This document shows, piece by piece, positions 4,200-56,213 of a DNA stretch of 64,000 bases (its first letter is position 1; every line of letters begins with the position of its first letter). Position numbers and translations under genes: made by a program. The DNA is taken from the sequence record PV740454.1, one strand, 5' to 3'. Below the pieces are notes generated by a model. It worked only from the letters and a program-made list of their open reading frames with translations, did not search any database and had not been told where the DNA came from.

Positions 4200-4276
4200 A
4201 AAAGGGTTGACAGATGTCAGCCCTTTTTTGTATTATAGCTACATCGAAACGAAATACACAAAGAGAGAACATTATG
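4200..4276 (+). promoter_or_regulatory. terminator-fused early promoter/leader cassette (PeSL-like)
   Basis: AAAAGGGTTGAC-AGAT-GTCAGCCCTTTTTT hairpin+U tract containing TTGACA; TATTAT; ATCGAAACGA leader; AGAGAGAACATT-ATG. Confidence 0.85.
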
Positions 4277-18172: not shown

Positions 18173-18249
18173 AAAAGGGTTGACACATGTCAGCCCTTTT
18201 TTGTATTATAGCTACATCAAAACGAAACACGAAAAAGGAAAACATTATG
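18173..18249 (+). promoter_or_regulatory. terminator-fused early promoter/leader cassette
   Basis: GGGTTGAC-ACAT-GTCAGCCCTTTTTT; TTGACA-18-TATTAT; AAGGAAAACATT-ATG. Confidence 0.85.
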
Positions 18250-20952: not shown

Positions 20953-20961
20953 AAGTTAAAG

Positions 20962-21042
20962 AAAAGGGTTGACACATGTCAGCCCTTTTTTGTATTATCT
21001 CTATATCGAAACGACATCGACTAACAAAGAGAGAATATTATG
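20962..21042 (+). promoter_or_regulatory. terminator-fused early promoter/leader cassette
   Basis: Same hairpin and leader as 4200. Confidence 0.85.
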
Positions 21043-21396
21043 TTTAACGCTACTACAGTACTAAACCAACTTACACAATCAAACAACGGTCAATCTCGCT
21101 TAGTTGCTATGACTGGTGCTAAGAACTTGCTTCAGTCTGAAGAGAAACAGTTTGTTTCATTCAAGCTGCCGAAAGTAGTACGTGGTATTAACTACGTGAA
21201 AATCACTCTGAACAGCAAAGACCTATATGATGTTGAGTTTGGTAAAGTCTCTAACAAAGCTTGTCCAGAAATGAAAAAGCTTGGTATTAAAGTGATGATG
21301 CCGAATTACGACGTGAAAACAGTAGTAAACGACGTATACAATGACTCGTTAAAAGCTTGTTTTGAACGTGAAACGACTCTTTTACTATCTCTATAA
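21040..21396 (+). CDS. conserved phage hypothetical protein (MTGAK motif)
   Basis: Cassette ATG; L.QL...MTGAKN...INYVKITL..DLY. Confidence 0.7.
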   Translation: MFNATTVLNQLTQSNNGQSRLVAMTGAKNLLQSEEKQFVSFKLPKVVRGINYVKITLNSKDLYDVEFGKVSNKACPEMKKLGIKVMMPNYDVKTVVNDVYNDSLKACFERETTLLLSL

Positions 21397-21406
21397 GGAA
21401 AATATT

Positions 21407-21769
21407 ATGTCTATTCCATCAATTGTTGGTAATATCGCTGCTGATTTGCTTGAAAACACCGAGCTTTTAAGCGATTACACGTCTTATACTTGCTTTATGC
21501 TAGAAGACAAAGCATACAATCACGTAGAACACAAGATTGATTTGCTTGAGTACATTCACGTTTCAGGCATTGAATTCATCTTGGCAATTCGTGATGGTAA
21601 AGTGAAACTGCCATTTGTACTAGGCGAAGATGCTGAGCGAGACCTCAATACAATGATCGCTGACCAATATGCAGGCGCTTTTGTACACGTTTTAGCAAGC
21701 GGTGATATGGAAAAATTCACTGTCATACGCTCAGAATGGTTGAAATTCCTTGCAAAAGAGGCAAAATAA
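21407..21769 (+). CDS. R.xWL paralog family, member 1
   Basis: YTC...GAFVH...RSEWLKFL. Confidence 0.75.
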   Translation: MSIPSIVGNIAADLLENTELLSDYTSYTCFMLEDKAYNHVEHKIDLLEYIHVSGIEFILAIRDGKVKLPFVLGEDAERDLNTMIADQYAGAFVHVLASGDMEKFTVIRSEWLKFLAKEAK

Positions 21770-22185
21770 TGAAGAAAATCATACTTTTAGGTGCATTTTC
21801 AGCTATTTTGACTGGTTGTGGTGGTGATTGGGAGACATTAGAGCGCGTATATCTGATGCAGAGAACGCCAGCACAGCAAGCTATTGTTGACGAATGGGCT
21901 GTTCAATGTAAAGAGAAAGAGCTTGACCAAGGGTTGGTTGCTGGTTGTACAACGCTTGCTGAAGCGACATATGCGAATTACGGTGATAGAGTTGCATACG
22001 CTACTTACATTAGAAACGGTCGTGTGTATAAGCGTACGCCTTGTAATGTCGATGGACTTACTGAACGAGAAGGTTTAGTTTGCAGTGGTAAAGTTGAAAA
22101 AATCGTAATTAAATCTGAAAAACTGCTTGACGTAAGCTCCCAAAACCGCGATAATAGCTCTATCGAAACGAGATACGTTAACTAG
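21769..22185 (+). CDS. lipoprotein
   Basis: Lipobox LTGC; four further Cys. Confidence 0.7.
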   Translation: MKKIILLGAFSAILTGCGGDWETLERVYLMQRTPAQQAIVDEWAVQCKEKELDQGLVAGCTTLAEATYANYGDRVAYATYIRNGRVYKRTPCNVDGLTEREGLVCSGKVEKIVIKSEKLLDVSSQNRDNSSIETRYVN

Positions 22186-22198
22186 AGAGAACATTATG
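22127..22198 (+). promoter_or_regulatory. early promoter/leader cassette without terminator
   Basis: TTGACG-17-GATAAT; ATCGAAACGAGATAC; AGAGAGAACATT-ATG. Confidence 0.75.
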
Positions 22199-22420
22199 AC
22201 TGATTACGAATTCGACGCACTATCAAACGCAGCACAAGTTGCACACATGAACGTTGAAGTTGTTGAAACTGTAAAGACAGTAAACGACGTGAACTACGTA
22301 AAGCGCGAATTCTTGCTTGATGGTGAAGAGTACAAAGCACCACACTTCGAGTGCAACTGCACTATCAAGCACACAGAAGAAGAAATTCTTGCGTGGATTG
22401 ACGAAGTATTTTTTGCTTAA
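22196..22420 (+). CDS. hypothetical protein
   Basis: Cassette ATG. Confidence 0.7.
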   Translation: MTDYEFDALSNAAQVAHMNVEVVETVKTVNDVNYVKREFLLDGEEYKAPHFECNCTIKHTEEEILAWIDEVFFA

Positions 22421-22432
22421 ATGGAGAACATC

Positions 22433-22765
22433 ATGACCAATTCAGATATTCAAGACATCAAAGACGCTGCTATTACGGTACTAGAACGTCGTAAGTTCGA
22501 CGATTGGACTTGCTGTCAAATTGCAATGCTACTGCCTGATGACGATTCAATCAGAATCGCTGCTCTTAACTACATCGAATCGTTCAGTGGTGCGTTTATC
22601 GATACTCTAGGTCTACCAGAGCATATCGCATCAGAAGCGGTAAACTACACGTCATTTTTAGACTGTATTGAAATCGACACTAAAGGCACTCAATGCGAGT
22701 TGTCAATGGAATACCTTCGCGAAGCATGGTTGAAATTTCTAATTGACAACGTGGAGAAAAACTAA
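22433..22765 (+). CDS. R.xWL paralog family, member 2
   Basis: WTCC...GAFID...REAWLKFL. Confidence 0.7.
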   Translation: MTNSDIQDIKDAAITVLERRKFDDWTCCQIAMLLPDDDSIRIAALNYIESFSGAFIDTLGLPEHIASEAVNYTSFLDCIEIDTKGTQCELSMEYLREAWLKFLIDNVEKN

Positions 22766-23139
22766 TGACTGATTTAGAGATTCAAGGACAAGTACGTTCT
22801 CAAGCAGCGCGTATTCTTAAAGAAAACGACTTTCATCATATCTGCATGTACACGTGCAATGATATCGAGTATTCGATTGTCGAAGACAACAAGGTTACTG
22901 CTGAAGAACAACCGCATGTGCGTTACGTAGTTCGTGATTACATCGAAACTCAAGCTACGGGGTTTCTTCGTGCATTACGCGATGACAGCTCAATTCTAGG
23001 GTTTAGTATTGGTCGTATTTTACCATTCGGCGCGTTTATTCATTCAATCGCACGTGTTGGTATAGAGAATGTTGATCAATCTCGATTTACAGCAGCACGA
23101 GCAGCTTGGTTGAAATACCTTTCTACTGGAGAAATGTAA
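22765..23139 (+). CDS. R.xWL paralog family, member 3
   Basis: YTC...GAFIH...RAAWLKYL. Confidence 0.75.
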   Translation: MTDLEIQGQVRSQAARILKENDFHHICMYTCNDIEYSIVEDNKVTAEEQPHVRYVVRDYIETQATGFLRALRDDSSILGFSIGRILPFGAFIHSIARVGIENVDQSRFTAARAAWLKYLSTGEM

Positions 23140-23498
23140 TGGAAAAAGTACTACGCGAAGTAGCAAAAGAGCTACTTGAAGAAACCGATCTTCTTAAAGA
23201 CCGAGGCTTTTTTAGCTGTCATGAGCTACGTGACCGCGCAAAACGTCGAGGTGTCAATGCATTCAAAGTTGAAATGCTAATCGACAATATTGGCGAAAAA
23301 TTCGTTACGCGCATCAGAGCACGTAAAATCGGTGTTGCTAATATCACTGACTTTGCGTACCGCCGTAATGAAAATCGTAGTTACGTTGGTGCTTTTGTCC
23401 ATGCATATTCGTACGTAGCAGAAGACGAGATCGACGTAAACACGTTATTCGAGATTCGCACAGCATGGCTTCAATTTGTAGCAGAAGGCGATTACTAA
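23139..23498 (+). CDS. R.xWL paralog family, member 4
   Basis: FSC...GAFVH...RTAWLQFV. Confidence 0.75.
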   Translation: MEKVLREVAKELLEETDLLKDRGFFSCHELRDRAKRRGVNAFKVEMLIDNIGEKFVTRIRARKIGVANITDFAYRRNENRSYVGAFVHAYSYVAEDEIDVNTLFEIRTAWLQFVAEGDY

Positions 23499-23872
23499 TG
23501 ATTGATGAACTAGTAAAAACAACCGCAGCGAGTATGCTTGAAGATACAAGTTTGCTTTGCGACGAGAAAGAATATTCATGTTGCGTCATCGTCGATAAAA
23601 TGGTAGAGCATCATGGCTACGTACCTCATACTGTATATCAGCATTTAGACGTAAAAGGCGTTGAGTTCTTACAGCTTGTTTTAGACAAGCCAGAAACACT
23701 ATGCTTTGAATTATCACCTGATACACTCGCTATGGTAAAAGAAGACATCGATGATCAAGACCCATCTGCGTTTGTTCATTATATCGCTCGTAATAGCAAT
23801 GACAGTTTAGACCCAGTGAAATTCGAGAACGTGCGCACAGCATGGTTAACTTTCTTAGCAGAAGGCAATTAA
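23498..23872 (+). CDS. R.xWL paralog family, member 5
   Basis: YSC...SAFVH...RTAWLTFL. Confidence 0.75.
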   Translation: MIDELVKTTAASMLEDTSLLCDEKEYSCCVIVDKMVEHHGYVPHTVYQHLDVKGVEFLQLVLDKPETLCFELSPDTLAMVKEDIDDQDPSAFVHYIARNSNDSLDPVKFENVRTAWLTFLAEGN

Positions 23873-23873
23873 G

Positions 23874-24395
23874 ATGACATTAGAAGAACGCCTTGCATTG
23901 CTCGAACAAGAGCTAAGCACCACACCACCAGCGCAAATACTAGCTGAATTGAAGTCATACGAGCCTAAAGGTTCGCTGGTGGATGATTTCATTCTTGACA
24001 CACTCATCCCGACTCTAGCTAAAGCCAAAGCACATGAGCTACTAGCTGATGAGCGTATGGTCACAGACATGGAAGTTTACACGTGCAACGAGATCAACAA
24101 CTTTGTAATTGATGCGCTTGAAATCGACGATTACGACGAAGCACAAGCGGTTCGTTTTTATCTTCAAGATCAATCTAAGGCGTTTGTTGAAAGCGTTGTA
24201 TCTGATGCAGAATCTGTAGTAGGGTTTACACCATCTGACTATGCATTATCTGAATTACAGGTAAGTCTTGATAATTGTCGTTACCAAGGTGCGTTTATTC
24301 ATGTAATGGTAATGAACGACTACGGCTATAAAGACGAGACGAAGTTCCCATCTGCTCGTACAGCTTGGTTGAAATTTATCTTAGAAAATGCTTGA
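23874..24395 (+). CDS. R.xWL paralog family, member 6 (N-terminal extension)
   Basis: YTC...GAFIH...RTAWLKFI. Confidence 0.75.
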   Translation: MTLEERLALLEQELSTTPPAQILAELKSYEPKGSLVDDFILDTLIPTLAKAKAHELLADERMVTDMEVYTCNEINNFVIDALEIDDYDEAQAVRFYLQDQSKAFVESVVSDAESVVGFTPSDYALSELQVSLDNCRYQGAFIHVMVMNDYGYKDETKFPSARTAWLKFILENA

Positions 24396-24443
24396 CAGAC
24401 ATTTCATACATCTGTATTCTACGTGTATTGAAAAGGAGATAAC

Positions 24444-24839
24444 ATGAAACTACGTACACTAATCATCGAAGGCGCAGCAGAGCTAGTTCAAGACAAAGAG
24501 CTTTTATCAGACAAATCCCAATTCAGTTGCGGTCTAGTTGCAATGCACTGTTGTAAACACGTTAAATCATCTAGACAATTTCGAGTTTACGACGAAGCGC
24601 AGAAAATCATTCGTCTTGAAGCGAAGGTGTTTTTGAAAAAGATACTAGCTGATGACGAATCGATTATCGGGTTTAGCTTATCTGATGAACTACGCGAAAA
24701 AACAGAAGGTATGCTTGGTTACGAGTGTAATGCCTTTGTTCATACGCTATCAACAATAGCTGAAGACGTTCGCGACGCGAATCGATTCACTGCTGTACGT
24801 AAAGCATGGTTAACTCACTTAGCAAATGGAGAAGTATAA
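24444..24839 (+). CDS. R.xWL paralog family, member 7
   Basis: FSC...NAFVH...RKAWLTHL. Confidence 0.75.
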   Translation: MKLRTLIIEGAAELVQDKELLSDKSQFSCGLVAMHCCKHVKSSRQFRVYDEAQKIIRLEAKVFLKKILADDESIIGFSLSDELREKTEGMLGYECNAFVHTLSTIAEDVRDANRFTAVRKAWLTHLANGEV

Positions 24840-25207
24840 TGTACGATTTAATGGCAGCAAAAGCACGTAAGATTCTAAGCGATTCTGATTTCATGACAAA
24901 CGAGCACGAGTTTAGTTGCCTTGCTATTGCTGGTTATGTTGAGCGTAACAGCGACATGCGTTACCGTGATGCAAGTGCAGCAGTGAAAGAGCTTGGTGCA
25001 TCGTTTGTTTACCAAGTGCTAAAAGACGACGTATTCATGCTTGGTTTTGAGCTATCAGATTATGCTCGTGCGAAGATCGCAGATGAAGTCGACCAGTTTG
25101 TTCATGATATCGCGTCATCATCTGAAGACAATATCGACCCAGAGCTGTTTCGACGTGCTCGTAAATCATGGTTAGAGTTTGTCATTGAAAATGGGGAAGT
25201 GCAATGA
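24839..25207 (+). CDS. R.xWL paralog family, member 8
   Basis: FSC...DQFVH...RKSWLEFV. Confidence 0.75.
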   Translation: MYDLMAAKARKILSDSDFMTNEHEFSCLAIAGYVERNSDMRYRDASAAVKELGASFVYQVLKDDVFMLGFELSDYARAKIADEVDQFVHDIASSSEDNIDPELFRRARKSWLEFVIENGEVQ

Positions 25208-25560
25208 TTTCATTGGTTGTTCAAGTAGAAGCATTCAAGTTGCTTGAAGACAAAGACCTTCTACGTGATACATGTCAGTACACATGTAATATTCTAGAAG
25301 ACAACGCGCATCGAGTCAGTGCATACGGTCGTATTGCTATTGGTGAATACATTGAAGCGAAAGGGCTAGAGTTCTTACAGTGCGTTCTAGACGAAGAAAT
25401 CAATTTCAGTTTTGATTTTGACCGTGAATCGATTGCTGATTCTGTACGTGATAAATTCCCGGGTGCATTTGTGAATCATATTTCAGGTGAAGACATAGAG
25501 TGTTTTGCTGAAGTTCGCAGAGCATGGTTAGAGTTTTTGACAGTGGAGCGTGACGTATGA
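25204..25560 (+). CDS. R.xWL paralog family, member 9
   Basis: YTC...GAFVNH...RRAWLEFL. Confidence 0.75.
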   Translation: MISLVVQVEAFKLLEDKDLLRDTCQYTCNILEDNAHRVSAYGRIAIGEYIEAKGLEFLQCVLDEEINFSFDFDRESIADSVRDKFPGAFVNHISGEDIECFAEVRRAWLEFLTVERDV

Positions 25561-25904
25561 AATTAGAAGAACTAGCAGTAGATCATCCGTATTACTGTTC
25601 AGACAGTAATTACTACAGTAATGACGCGGGGTGTTCGTTTGAGACAGCGACTGACTTTCTAGAAGAGTTCAACGACGCTGACATTGACATGAACTTGGTT
25701 TTTCGTTGGGATGTCAAGCCGCATTTAGACGAAACAGAAGAAGTCACAGACAAGTTCTACGCTGATGTGTTTATGATACACCAACGCAAAGGTATTTTCG
25801 CGCCGTATCACATCGAGTCTATTACAGAGGACGAAGCATCTAGTTTCGCTGAGTATCTACGTAGACATAAAGAAGCATTAACTAAGTTATGGGAGCCGTT
25901 ATGA
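25557..25904 (+). CDS. hypothetical acidic protein
   Basis: HPYYC...NLVFRWD. Confidence 0.7.
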   Translation: MKLEELAVDHPYYCSDSNYYSNDAGCSFETATDFLEEFNDADIDMNLVFRWDVKPHLDETEEVTDKFYADVFMIHQRKGIFAPYHIESITEDEASSFAEYLRRHKEALTKLWEPL

Positions 25905-26137
25905 TTTTCTTCAATATCTTATTGCTATACGTGTTCATTGCTGTTATGCTGTATCTGTACAGCGCGGGTTGTGAATACGCTATGTACAAGTTAAAAGGTC
26001 ACCTAGATAGCAAGTTTCCAATCACATTCTTTGACACTCACAAGATGATTGCTGCTGGTTGTTTCTTGTGGTTACCTATTCTTATGTTCATTGTTCACAA
26101 TGAAATCGTGAATTTGAAATCGAAGTTCAAGAGGTAG
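25901..26137 (+). CDS. 2-TM membrane protein
   Basis: Hydrophobic helices. Confidence 0.65.
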   Translation: MIFFNILLLYVFIAVMLYLYSAGCEYAMYKLKGHLDSKFPITFFDTHKMIAAGCFLWLPILMFIVHNEIVNLKSKFKR

Positions 26138-46112: not shown

Positions 46113-46182
46113 AAAAAGGGTTGACAGATGTCAGCCCTTTTTCGTATCATAGCAATACGCAAACAAAAGAGAGAAAATTATG
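46113..46182 (+). promoter_or_regulatory. terminator-fused early promoter cassette
   Basis: GGGTTGAC-AGAT-GTCAGCCCTTTTT; TTGACA-18-TATCAT. Confidence 0.8.
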
Positions 46183-56142: not shown

Positions 56143-56213
56143 AAAAGGGTTGACAGATGTCAGCCCTTTTTTGTATCATACTCATATTGAAAACACCCAA
56201 GGAAAACAATATG
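56143..56213 (+). promoter_or_regulatory. terminator-fused early promoter cassette
   Basis: GGGTTGAC-AGAT-GTCAGCCCTTTTTT; TATCAT; AAGGA SD. Confidence 0.8.

Follow-up and report, generated by a model that had tools for sequence, protein, structure and literature searches.

Among the defences against T4-like phages, CmdTAC is a widespread one, a toxin-antitoxin-chaperone abortive-infection system in which CmdT is an mRNA ADP-ribosyltransferase and CmdC is SecB-like. The head of the antitoxin CmdA (PMC9519451; PMC11618068) is predicted to form a helix pair (PMC11618068). It is followed by a disordered, ClpXP-degradable chaperone-addiction tail. Stabilisation of CmdA suffices for T4 to escape from CmdTAC (PMC11618068), and a TAC antitoxin becomes chaperone-independent once the chaperone-addiction tail has been removed (bioRxiv 2024.02.24.581848). 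No natural phage inhibitor of CmdTAC was found in the searchable literature.

The locus described here lies in a window of 64,000 nucleotides of PV740454.1, the 247-kb genome of Vibrio phage CZ01, a T4-like vibriophage related to nt-1; at the same coordinates the window and that record agree at 100% of positions. The nine ORFs reported by the first-pass annotation are all present on the plus strand and are annotated as CDS in PV740454.1, namely CZ01_045 (member 1) and CZ01_048-055 (members 2-9). Each of the nine gives its own end-to-end match to PHROG 4354 (about positions 3-129 of the 130 in the profile), with E values from 4.8e-18 to 3.8e-38. Member 1 (120 aa, 21407..21769, E 1.3e-29; family HMM E 3e-40) is set apart from the rest by a pair of genes unrelated to the family (21769-22185 and 22196-22420). 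The remaining eight are consecutive, as had also been observed: member 2 (CZ01_048, 110 aa, 22433..22765, E 4.8e-18), which is the most diverged copy, member 3 (CZ01_049, 124 aa, 22765..23139, E 6.5e-26), member 4 (CZ01_050, 119 aa, 23139..23498, E 4.4e-27), member 5 (CZ01_051, 124 aa, 23498..23872, E 3.8e-38), member 6 (CZ01_052, 173 aa, 23874..24395), member 7 (CZ01_053, 131 aa, 24444..24839, E 2.6e-34), member 8 (CZ01_054, 122 aa, 24839..25207, E 1.2e-32) and member 9 (CZ01_055, 118 aa, 25204..25560, E 1.5e-29). Their only gap measures 48 bp (24396-24443). Member 2 starts at 22421 in PV740454.1, as against the ATG at 22433 of the first-pass ORF and the nt-1 annotation, and a lipoprotein-like gene is located within the array region.

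The PHROG 4354 entry gives the function as unknown and provides neither fold nor context; the present analysis adds the fused head and the survey of copy numbers, both reported below. An HMM built from the nine ORFs matched those nine alone in the window, where the next match had an E value of 0.5, and a search with it for a tenth copy across the whole CZ01 genome found none. Profile searches of Pfam, NCBIfam and PDB sequences returned nothing above noise for the family, a match to a characterised housekeeping family included. The ESM Atlas search produced no usable match, and the word-index protein search recovered the nt-1 orthologue of member 5 only, with none for the 49-aa head. The similarity of member 4 to PDC-M10A of PADLOC (E ~0.006) was treated as noise. 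The possibility of an acidic DNA mimic was rejected, the isoelectric points (4.2 to 6.4) being no different from those of neighbouring genes. The nine array ORFs constitute a genuine phage-only protein family.

Seven residues are invariant in the nine members (A11, C29, F57, F92, R108, W111 and L112 in member 1 numbering). In a wider set of 39 sequences of the family (equivalent to about 30 effective ones, 20-35% identical), A, C, F, R and W are invariant too. The Cys, the Arg and the (S/T) preceding the Cys are conserved in 100% of this set and the His of AF(V/I)H in 87%, being lost in members 2 and 9, QD01_182, P0030 and P0035. Both exceptions listed in the first-pass annotation were recovered by the alignment: member 2 carries Asp at this position, and in member 9 the His is shifted by one residue (Asn-His). 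Because the His occurs in only 87% of the sequences, the proposed Cys/His site is unproven. The conserved columns are mostly hydrophobic, with a mean entropy of 1.47 bits versus 2.67 for polar columns.

The AF2 model of member 5 is a compact all-alpha domain (pLDDT 95.1, pTM 0.90), which superimposes on the BFVD models of eight nt-1 paralogs with TM scores of 0.78-0.89 and, more weakly, on the model of the member 2 orthologue (TM 0.59-0.67, probability 0.94). The member 6 model (pLDDT 90.7) retrieves the same BFVD matches. Confident models and mostly hydrophobic conserved columns support the earlier proposal of a single fold whose core is fixed and whose surfaces vary, and the predicted structures do share a fold. 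Foldseek gave zero matches with E <= 0.001 against the PDB. VIA-align against 48,161 chains gave best Z scores of 5.1 for member 5 (HTLV-1 capsid NTD) and 6.2 for member 6 (eIF2B), both below the noise level of the tool for helical models. Winged-helix, Cmr5 and T6SS-immunity (7jtu_B, Z 4.6 and 5.1) likenesses were scattered rows of the VIA-align output and were not taken as evidence. By these models the family shares one predicted all-alpha fold that was not seen among solved structures.

The array adjoins a DnaA-box cluster and lies inside a long run of early genes with no assigned function. Upstream of CZ01_044 and member 1, a terminator-promoter cassette (20960..20998, plus strand) consists of a 14-bp hairpin holding TTGACA, a T-run and TATTAT; it agrees with the sigma-70 consensus at 11 of 12 positions, places the promoter at 20969 and is likely to be the early promoter for members 1-6. 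A second sigma-70-like promoter (TTGACA-17-TATTCT, 10/12; 24392..24420, plus strand) lies at the sole intergenic gap upstream of members 7-9. Sites of the form TTGACA-N16-18-TATNNT occur eight times in the window, all on the plus strand, the cassette being one of them; the expected number is 1.4. The 64 kb contain a single copy of the late motif TATAAATA. Judged by these promoter motifs, the array would be read from host-type early promoters. A search for sequencing runs covering the region found one DNA run and no RNA-seq run.

A family profile search of 1.84 billion representative proteins gave 35 matches, about 30 of them true and nearly all of these from T4-like vibriophages; P0020, P0031, P0032 and P0034 are long repetitive proteins and were set aside as false positives. 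The number of copies varies from nine in CZ01 and nt-1 to six in F86, four in VH7D and phi-ST2, three in QD01 and VS2, and two in KVP40, and the distribution of the family is narrow and accessory-like. Recent duplication or gene conversion was rejected, as DNA-level repeats are limited to stretches of 20-38 nt encoding R.xWL.F. The array consists of old, deeply diverged tandem duplicates. Member 2 is orthologous to the C-domain carried by QD01_182, with which it groups at 98/92 support and shares the DD(F/W)TCCQIA motif. Strong diversifying selection, implied by the first-pass annotation, was not seen between CZ01 and nt-1: their orthologues give an overall dN/dS of 0.31, indicative of purifying selection, and the value of 1.5 for member 3 derives from few changes.

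The extra N-terminal helical module ascribed to member 6 was found in both the alignment and the AF2 model as residues 1-43 (23874..24002, plus strand), with predicted helices at 3-12 and 19-28, ahead of the PHROG 4354 domain (residues 44-172, 24003..24395, E 3.7e-37). The head alone matches the PADLOC profile PD-T4-9_B with an E value of 2.1e-7 (profile positions 4-43 of 77); in member 6, residues 3-43 align to positions 4-44. The same profile matches QD01_182 at 9e-13 (positions 1-46) and true Vibrio CmdA at 5e-16, and gave no match in 14 control genomes. Nine columns are invariant in the alignment of the heads of member 6, true Vibrio CmdA and stand-alone phage copies. The N-terminal module of member 6 is a homologue of the two-helix CmdA head, CmdA being the CmdTAC (PD-T4-9) antitoxin. 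Within the array it occurs in member 6 only, the other eight members having no head. The two carriers, member 6 of CZ01 and the member 2 orthologue of QD01, belong to different paralog subfamilies. The family is present and the head absent in KVP40 and F86, hence the core function of the family must be independent of the head.

The partners of CmdA, CmdT (PD-T4-9_A) and CmdC (PD-T4-9_C), were sought in the whole genomes of CZ01 and QD01 and none was found, although both profiles detected their targets in the prophage used as a positive control (1e-79 and 3e-52, respectively). This control, the P2-like prophage PQ189358 of V. cyclitrophicus, carries CmdT, CmdA and CmdC in one operon. The pattern is that of an orphan antitoxin: an antitoxin homologue occurs without its toxin in a lytic phage isolated on V. 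natriegens, and the complete CmdTAC occurs in the host genus, in the V. cyclitrophicus prophage. Scans of genome collections for bacterial relatives of Vibrio CmdT and CmdA confirmed none, and PD-T4-9 does not occur among the entries examined of a defence-system list for 21 V. crassostreae hosts.

The CmdA-like head was found in at least four C-terminally unrelated contexts, namely the ChAD tail, the PHROG 4354 domain, the C-domain of Arn.3 and 184E37 p0219, and also alone, as 51-aa genes of other lytic vibriophages. In T-even Arn.3 (the T4 NP_049871 family) the N-terminal 30 residues match the CmdA profile (E 1.2e-8, profile positions 1-30 only). Arn.3 is likewise an early gene, in the arn/asiA/motA region, but the domain at its C-terminus bears no relation to PHROG 4354 (family HMM E 0.16). 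Since T4 has the Arn.3 head and is still restricted by the CmdTAC of ECOR22 (PMC11618068), the head alone guarantees nothing or else is toxin-specific. Given its presence on Arn.3 and in the 51-aa genes of many vibriophages, the module may well extend far beyond the array.

The CmdA head suggests that at least member 6 disarms a suicide-type defence of the host. The array proteins, which are small, cytoplasmic and all-alpha, may well act as counter-defence binders rather than as enzymes, and the reading tentatively preferred here, which still falls short of an even chance, is that they are expressed early, with member 6 serving as an orphan antitoxin that needs no chaperone. Soon after infection begins, this protein would bind a CmdT-type mRNA ADP-ribosyltransferase toxin and would hold it neutralised even once the chaperone has been drawn off by capsid protein and the host antitoxin lost to degradation; in member 6 the stable PHROG 4354 domain takes the place of the chaperone-addicted tail of CmdA. 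The variable surfaces of the other eight copies may serve to bind further host proteins, toxins or defence components. From the CmdA head, the diversification against host defence proteins proposed in the first-pass annotation receives indirect support as far as member 6 is concerned; for the other eight members it is conjecture. A broader version, in which the PHROG 4354 domain acts as a general, immunity-like scaffold for neutralising toxins, each paralog faces a different Abi or TA effector, and heads are recombined between paralogs so that the array forms an "antitoxin library" aiding a broad host range, is regarded as unlikely.

Many T4 early proteins bind and redirect host housekeeping machinery, and it is somewhat unlikely, yet the most serious alternative, that the array encodes such takeover proteins, unrelated to defence and directed at transcription, replication, proteases or chaperones, with the head as a generic two-helix interaction or oligomerisation module shared with CmdA and Arn.3. 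The variety of contexts in which the head occurs, the position of the array within a long early-gene run beside the DnaA-box cluster and the purifying selection would all fit, and PHROG 4354 corresponds to BBH group 224, one of the core groups of 18 Schizotequatrovirus-type phages (PMC12028318). However, the only characterised protein with such a head is an antitoxin, a copy number of 2-9 in close relatives is odd for a conserved housekeeping target, and neither sequence nor fold searches linked the proteins to a known T4 takeover protein. Against the preferred counter-defence reading stand the low dN/dS, which gives no sign of an arms race between CZ01 and nt-1, the restriction of T4 by CmdTAC despite its Arn.3 head, the scans that confirmed no bacterial relatives of Vibrio CmdT and CmdA, and the presence of the family without the head in KVP40 and F86.

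A ligand or catalytic site may instead be marked by the Cys and Arg, which never vary, together with the frequent His. In the AF2 model the Cys is placed at the N-terminus of helix 3, and a helix N-terminus is a common place for nucleophilic cysteines. The family could accordingly be a small enzyme or a ligand- or metal-binding protein using the (S/T)-Cys, the His of AF(V/I)H and the Arg of R.xWL, with the His-less members inactive or regulatory, and conservation of this degree over about 30 effective, highly diverged sequences speaks in its favour. It nevertheless seems decidedly unlikely: the His is missing from five sequences, no acidic third residue is conserved in more than 71%, no enzyme was matched in sequence or fold (Pfam, NCBIfam, PDB, Foldseek, VIA-align), and in a monomer one Cys and one His are too few for a mononuclear metal site. 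That the array is a defence or superinfection-exclusion module borne by the phage, rather than counter-defence, is highly improbable. The head-only gene of phage 6E35.1a has been labelled "Defense?" from its PD-T4-9_B match (PMC12028318, Table S8), and the lipoprotein-like gene inside the array region could be counted for it; yet CmdT and CmdC are missing from CZ01 and QD01, a head without a toxin cannot serve as an abortive-infection system, and the carriers are strictly lytic T4-like phages.

New in this work are the homology of the member 6 head to CmdA and the presence of the same head on the member 2 orthologue of QD01. If the counter-defence reading is true, placing the toxin-binding head of an antitoxin on a stable domain would give phages a new means of defeating chaperone-gated TA systems. 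A confidently predicted fold without a solved match, present in nine copies in one genome, also merits structure determination and screens on defence panels in Vibrio natriegens, a convenient laboratory host.

T4 Dmd is a phage antitoxin against RnlA/LsoA. A further orphan antitoxin of phages is the DarG-like AdfB, which is reported to act against DarTG (PMC11257639; bioRxiv 2023.12.14.571748). The logic proposed for member 6 is the same: from a host TA defence, a lytic phage carries the antitoxin component and leaves out the toxin. Its target, however, would be CmdTAC, a chaperone-dependent TA system, and its putative mimicry would be confined to the head, which is mounted on an unrelated domain of novel fold. 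As compared with CmdA itself, the N-terminal helix pair is by prediction common to member 6 and QD01_182, but in member 6 the disordered chaperone-addiction element is absent and a folded, confidently helical domain of ~130 aa takes its place. Vibrio CmdA ends in Ala-Ala (ClpX degron) and adjoins CmdT and CmdC in an operon, whereas member 6 lacks the Ala-Ala end and stands without either partner in a lytic phage.

A family of nine small proteins, one of which carries an N-terminal module resembling the CmdA antitoxin, is encoded on the plus strand at 21407-25560 (CZ01_045 and CZ01_048 to CZ01_055, hereafter members 1-9) of Vibrio phage CZ01 (PV740454.1), a representative of Straboviridae with a 247-kb genome isolated on V. 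natriegens. All nine ORFs reported in the first-pass annotation are present as described there. Every gene of the region (bases 21000-26000, which match the CZ01 record with 100% identity at unchanged positions and phage nt-1 with 95.9%) is annotated as coding for a hypothetical protein, and a Pfam search of the nine members returned no match. Each of them, however, matches PHROG 4354, a family of unknown function, from end to end (E 4.8e-18 to 3.8e-38); the same group is listed as core, duplicated and of unknown function in a published pangenome table (PMC12028318). A profile built from the nine members found exactly nine copies both in the window, where the next ORF scored E 0.5, and in the whole CZ01 genome. 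In the alignment of the nine, identity to member 1 is 19-36%, and Ala11, Cys29, Phe57, Phe92, Arg108, Trp111 and Leu112 (member 1 numbering) are fully conserved. Since DNA-level repeats among the members are limited to short stretches encoding the R.xWL.F motif, the duplications are old. Members 2-9 are contiguous, and member 1 is set apart from member 2 by two genes, one lipoprotein-like and the other of 74 aa. The former, CZ01_046 (21769-22185), starts with a signal of the lipoprotein type, in which L-T-G-C closes a hydrophobic stretch, and has no PHROG match; it may code for a surface or superinfection-exclusion lipoprotein.

The AlphaFold2 model of member 5, obtained from a 39-sequence alignment (mean pLDDT 95.1, pTM 0.90), is all-alpha, with about eight helices and one tiny hairpin. 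A Foldseek search of BFVD with this model retrieved family members only, including eight nt-1 paralogs at TM 0.78-0.89, and no PDB entry was matched at E 0.001 or better; the fold is therefore common to the family and has no detectable solved relative. The superposition of the predicted paralog models bears out the earlier proposal of a single shared fold. In an exhaustive VIA-align comparison with 48,161 chains the best Z of member 5 was 5.1, which is below the noise level of the tool for helical models, and the top Z for the model of member 6 was 6.2. According to column entropy, the conserved positions of the family alignment are mostly hydrophobic (mean 1.47 bits versus 2.67 for polar columns). 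Of the polar positions, those conserved (member 5 numbering) are the (S/T)-Cys at the helix 3 N-terminus and Arg113, both 100%, His94 (87%), and Asp16 and Asp63 at 71% each.

When all family members were scanned with the PADLOC models, the sole significant match was that of PD-T4-9_B, the profile for CmdA, to member 6 (CZ01_052) and its nt-1 orthologue. Residues 3-43 of member 6 align with positions 4-44 of the 77 in the profile, and the module alone, termed here the head (residues 1-43), gives E 2.1e-7. In the AlphaFold2 model of member 6 it forms helices 3-12 and 19-28 preceding the family domain (pLDDT 83-87 in the head, 90.7 overall). The same head opens QD01_182 (E 8.6e-13) and is also found in VS1/VS2, ValKK3, XZ1 and phi-Grn1. 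The C-terminal domain of QD01_182 is an orthologue of member 2, not of member 6 (98/92 support; shared DD(F/W)TCCQIA motif), and the head has thus been fused to domains of two distinct paralog lineages. CZ01, nt-1 and QD01 have exactly one head each, KVP40 and F86 none, and the head HMM had no match in 14 control genomes.

PD-T4-9 is CmdTAC, made up of the toxin CmdT, which ADP-ribosylates mRNA, the antitoxin CmdA, encoded by the second gene, and the SecB-like chaperone CmdC (PMC9519451). CmdA is described as an N-terminal helix pair followed by a long disordered tail with a terminal ClpXP degron; once CmdC has been displaced by the T4 capsid protein, the antitoxin is degraded and the toxin becomes free, and T4 escapes by mutations that stabilise CmdA (PMC11618068). 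The CmdT and CmdC profiles found no match in CZ01 or QD01. The same profiles matched a P2-like prophage of V. cyclitrophicus, PQ189358 (CmdT 1e-79, CmdC 3e-52), where a full CmdTAC operon (L015:1908-3178) occupies a hypervariable region between ogr-like and replication genes, a site of the same kind as in E. coli ECOR22. Scans of genome collections with back-translated patterns for relatives of CmdT and CmdA were blank, a result which carries little weight for such patterns.

Heads also occur outside the family. The lytic vibriophages 6E35.1a (p0373, L017:2495-2650) and 1.103.O (gene 30, L016:2486-2641) have head-only genes of 51 aa, and 184E37.3a has a 105-aa form (p0219, L018:2001-2318), whose annotation as 'translation initiation factor 3-like' is wrong; in these three unrelated phages the match to PD-T4-9_B reaches E 4e-14 to 1e-12. 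The 6E35.1a gene had merely been flagged 'Defense?' (PMC12028318). Nine columns are invariant across true Vibrio CmdA, the head-only genes of phages and both fusions, and within this alignment a tail ending in Ala-Ala is present in true CmdA only. In addition, the Arn.3 proteins of T-even phages begin with a head of this kind: the first 30 residues of Arn.3 of Escherichia phage NR1 (L019:1501-1962; T4 NP_049871 family) match PD-T4-9_B positions 1-30 (E 1.2e-8), with a C-terminal domain unrelated to PHROG 4354; the same weak tblastn match recurs in about 260 records of enterobacterial T4-like phages.

Among 50,697 phage records searched by tblastn, the PHROG 4354 family was confined to 32 of Vibrio Straboviridae. 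When 1.84 billion representative proteins were searched with a profile, 35 matches resulted, four of which were repetitive proteins and were rejected as false positives. P0033 (L013:8001-8810), on a contig of an uncultured T4-like phage that also encodes endonuclease VII, is a natural tandem of two PHROG 4354 domains located between the genes for DNA ligase and uvsY. P0030 (L014:1129-1590), a distant member on a 5.7-kb contig, is situated upstream of the gene for a T7-type RNA polymerase, which is an early-gene position. The family therefore extends beyond the T4-like vibriophages; the remaining matches belong to Schizotequatrovirus, Mylasvirus or F86-type vibriophages. The HMM-based copy-number survey proposed at first pass yielded two to nine copies among related vibriophages (CZ01 and nt-1, 9; F86, 6; VH7D and phi-ST2, 4; QD01 and VS2, 3; KVP40, 2). 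The maximum-likelihood tree has a star-like shape and long branches; the CZ01 paralogs are mostly scattered, and F86 together with 6E35.1a-type phages forms an expansion clade of its own.

The nine copies correspond one-to-one between CZ01 and nt-1. The pooled dN/dS of the family is 0.31, versus 0.23 for 24 neighbouring genes, and member 3 alone exceeds 1 (1.5, on few substitutions). Along the array dS ranges from 0 to 0.30, which points to mosaic recombination. Compared with nt-1 (L009), members 1-5 are 86-95% identical (dS up to 0.30), and members 6-8 together with the downstream genes 98-100% (dS about 0); this pattern suggests a recombination breakpoint within the array (21407-25560).

Two sigma-70-type promoters were predicted on the plus strand: one at 20969-20998 (11/12 consensus match), inside a terminator-like hairpin, and another at 24392-24420 (10/12), within the array's single gap. 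The pattern TTGACA-N16-18-TATNNT occurs eight times in the window against 1.4 expected, always on the plus strand, and five of the eight sites represent the same hairpin-promoter cassette, nearly identical at 4207-4236, 18180-18209, 20969-20998, 46121-46150 and 56150-56179 (all plus strand). Its layout is a GC-rich hairpin with the -35 TTGACA in the stem, a T-run and then the -10 TAT(T/C)AT. CZ01 seems to reuse this cassette to punctuate its early genes. Across the 64 kb there is a single occurrence of TATAAATA, the late motif of T4 type. Judged by these motifs, the array fits an early transcription unit.

A role of the family in counter-defence is the favoured reading, though we hold it at somewhat below an even chance. 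Member 6 would act as an orphan antitoxin keeping a CmdT-type toxin neutralised during infection, a proposal which fits because the phages with the head are strictly lytic and have neither toxin nor chaperone, the region is an early one, and a stable domain takes the place of the tail. For the eight head-less members counter-defence is argued by association only: they have the same domain, array and promoters, vary in copy number and present variable surfaces over a fixed core. However, T4 has Arn.3 and yet is still restricted by the CmdTAC of ECOR22; CmdTAC was seen here in a prophage of V. cyclitrophicus, whereas CZ01 was isolated on V. natriegens; and KVP40 and F86 keep the family without the head. 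Nor does dN/dS give an arms-race signal. The invariant Cys and Arg may instead mark a ligand or catalytic site, and on these residues an enzymatic or ligand-binding function can be argued for, albeit an improbable one. Host takeover unrelated to defence is rated as unlikely but appreciable, and a defence system borne by the phage itself as most improbable.

In member 6 a stable domain stands where CmdA has its degradable tail. Chaperone addiction in TAC systems resides in the C-terminal tail of the antitoxin, and an antitoxin from which this tail has been removed no longer depends on the chaperone (bioRxiv 2024.02.24.581848). No paper tying CmdA homologues to counter-defence was found in the literature searched. 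Counter-defence by an orphan antitoxin has precedents in Dmd of T4 and in antitoxins directed against DarTG.
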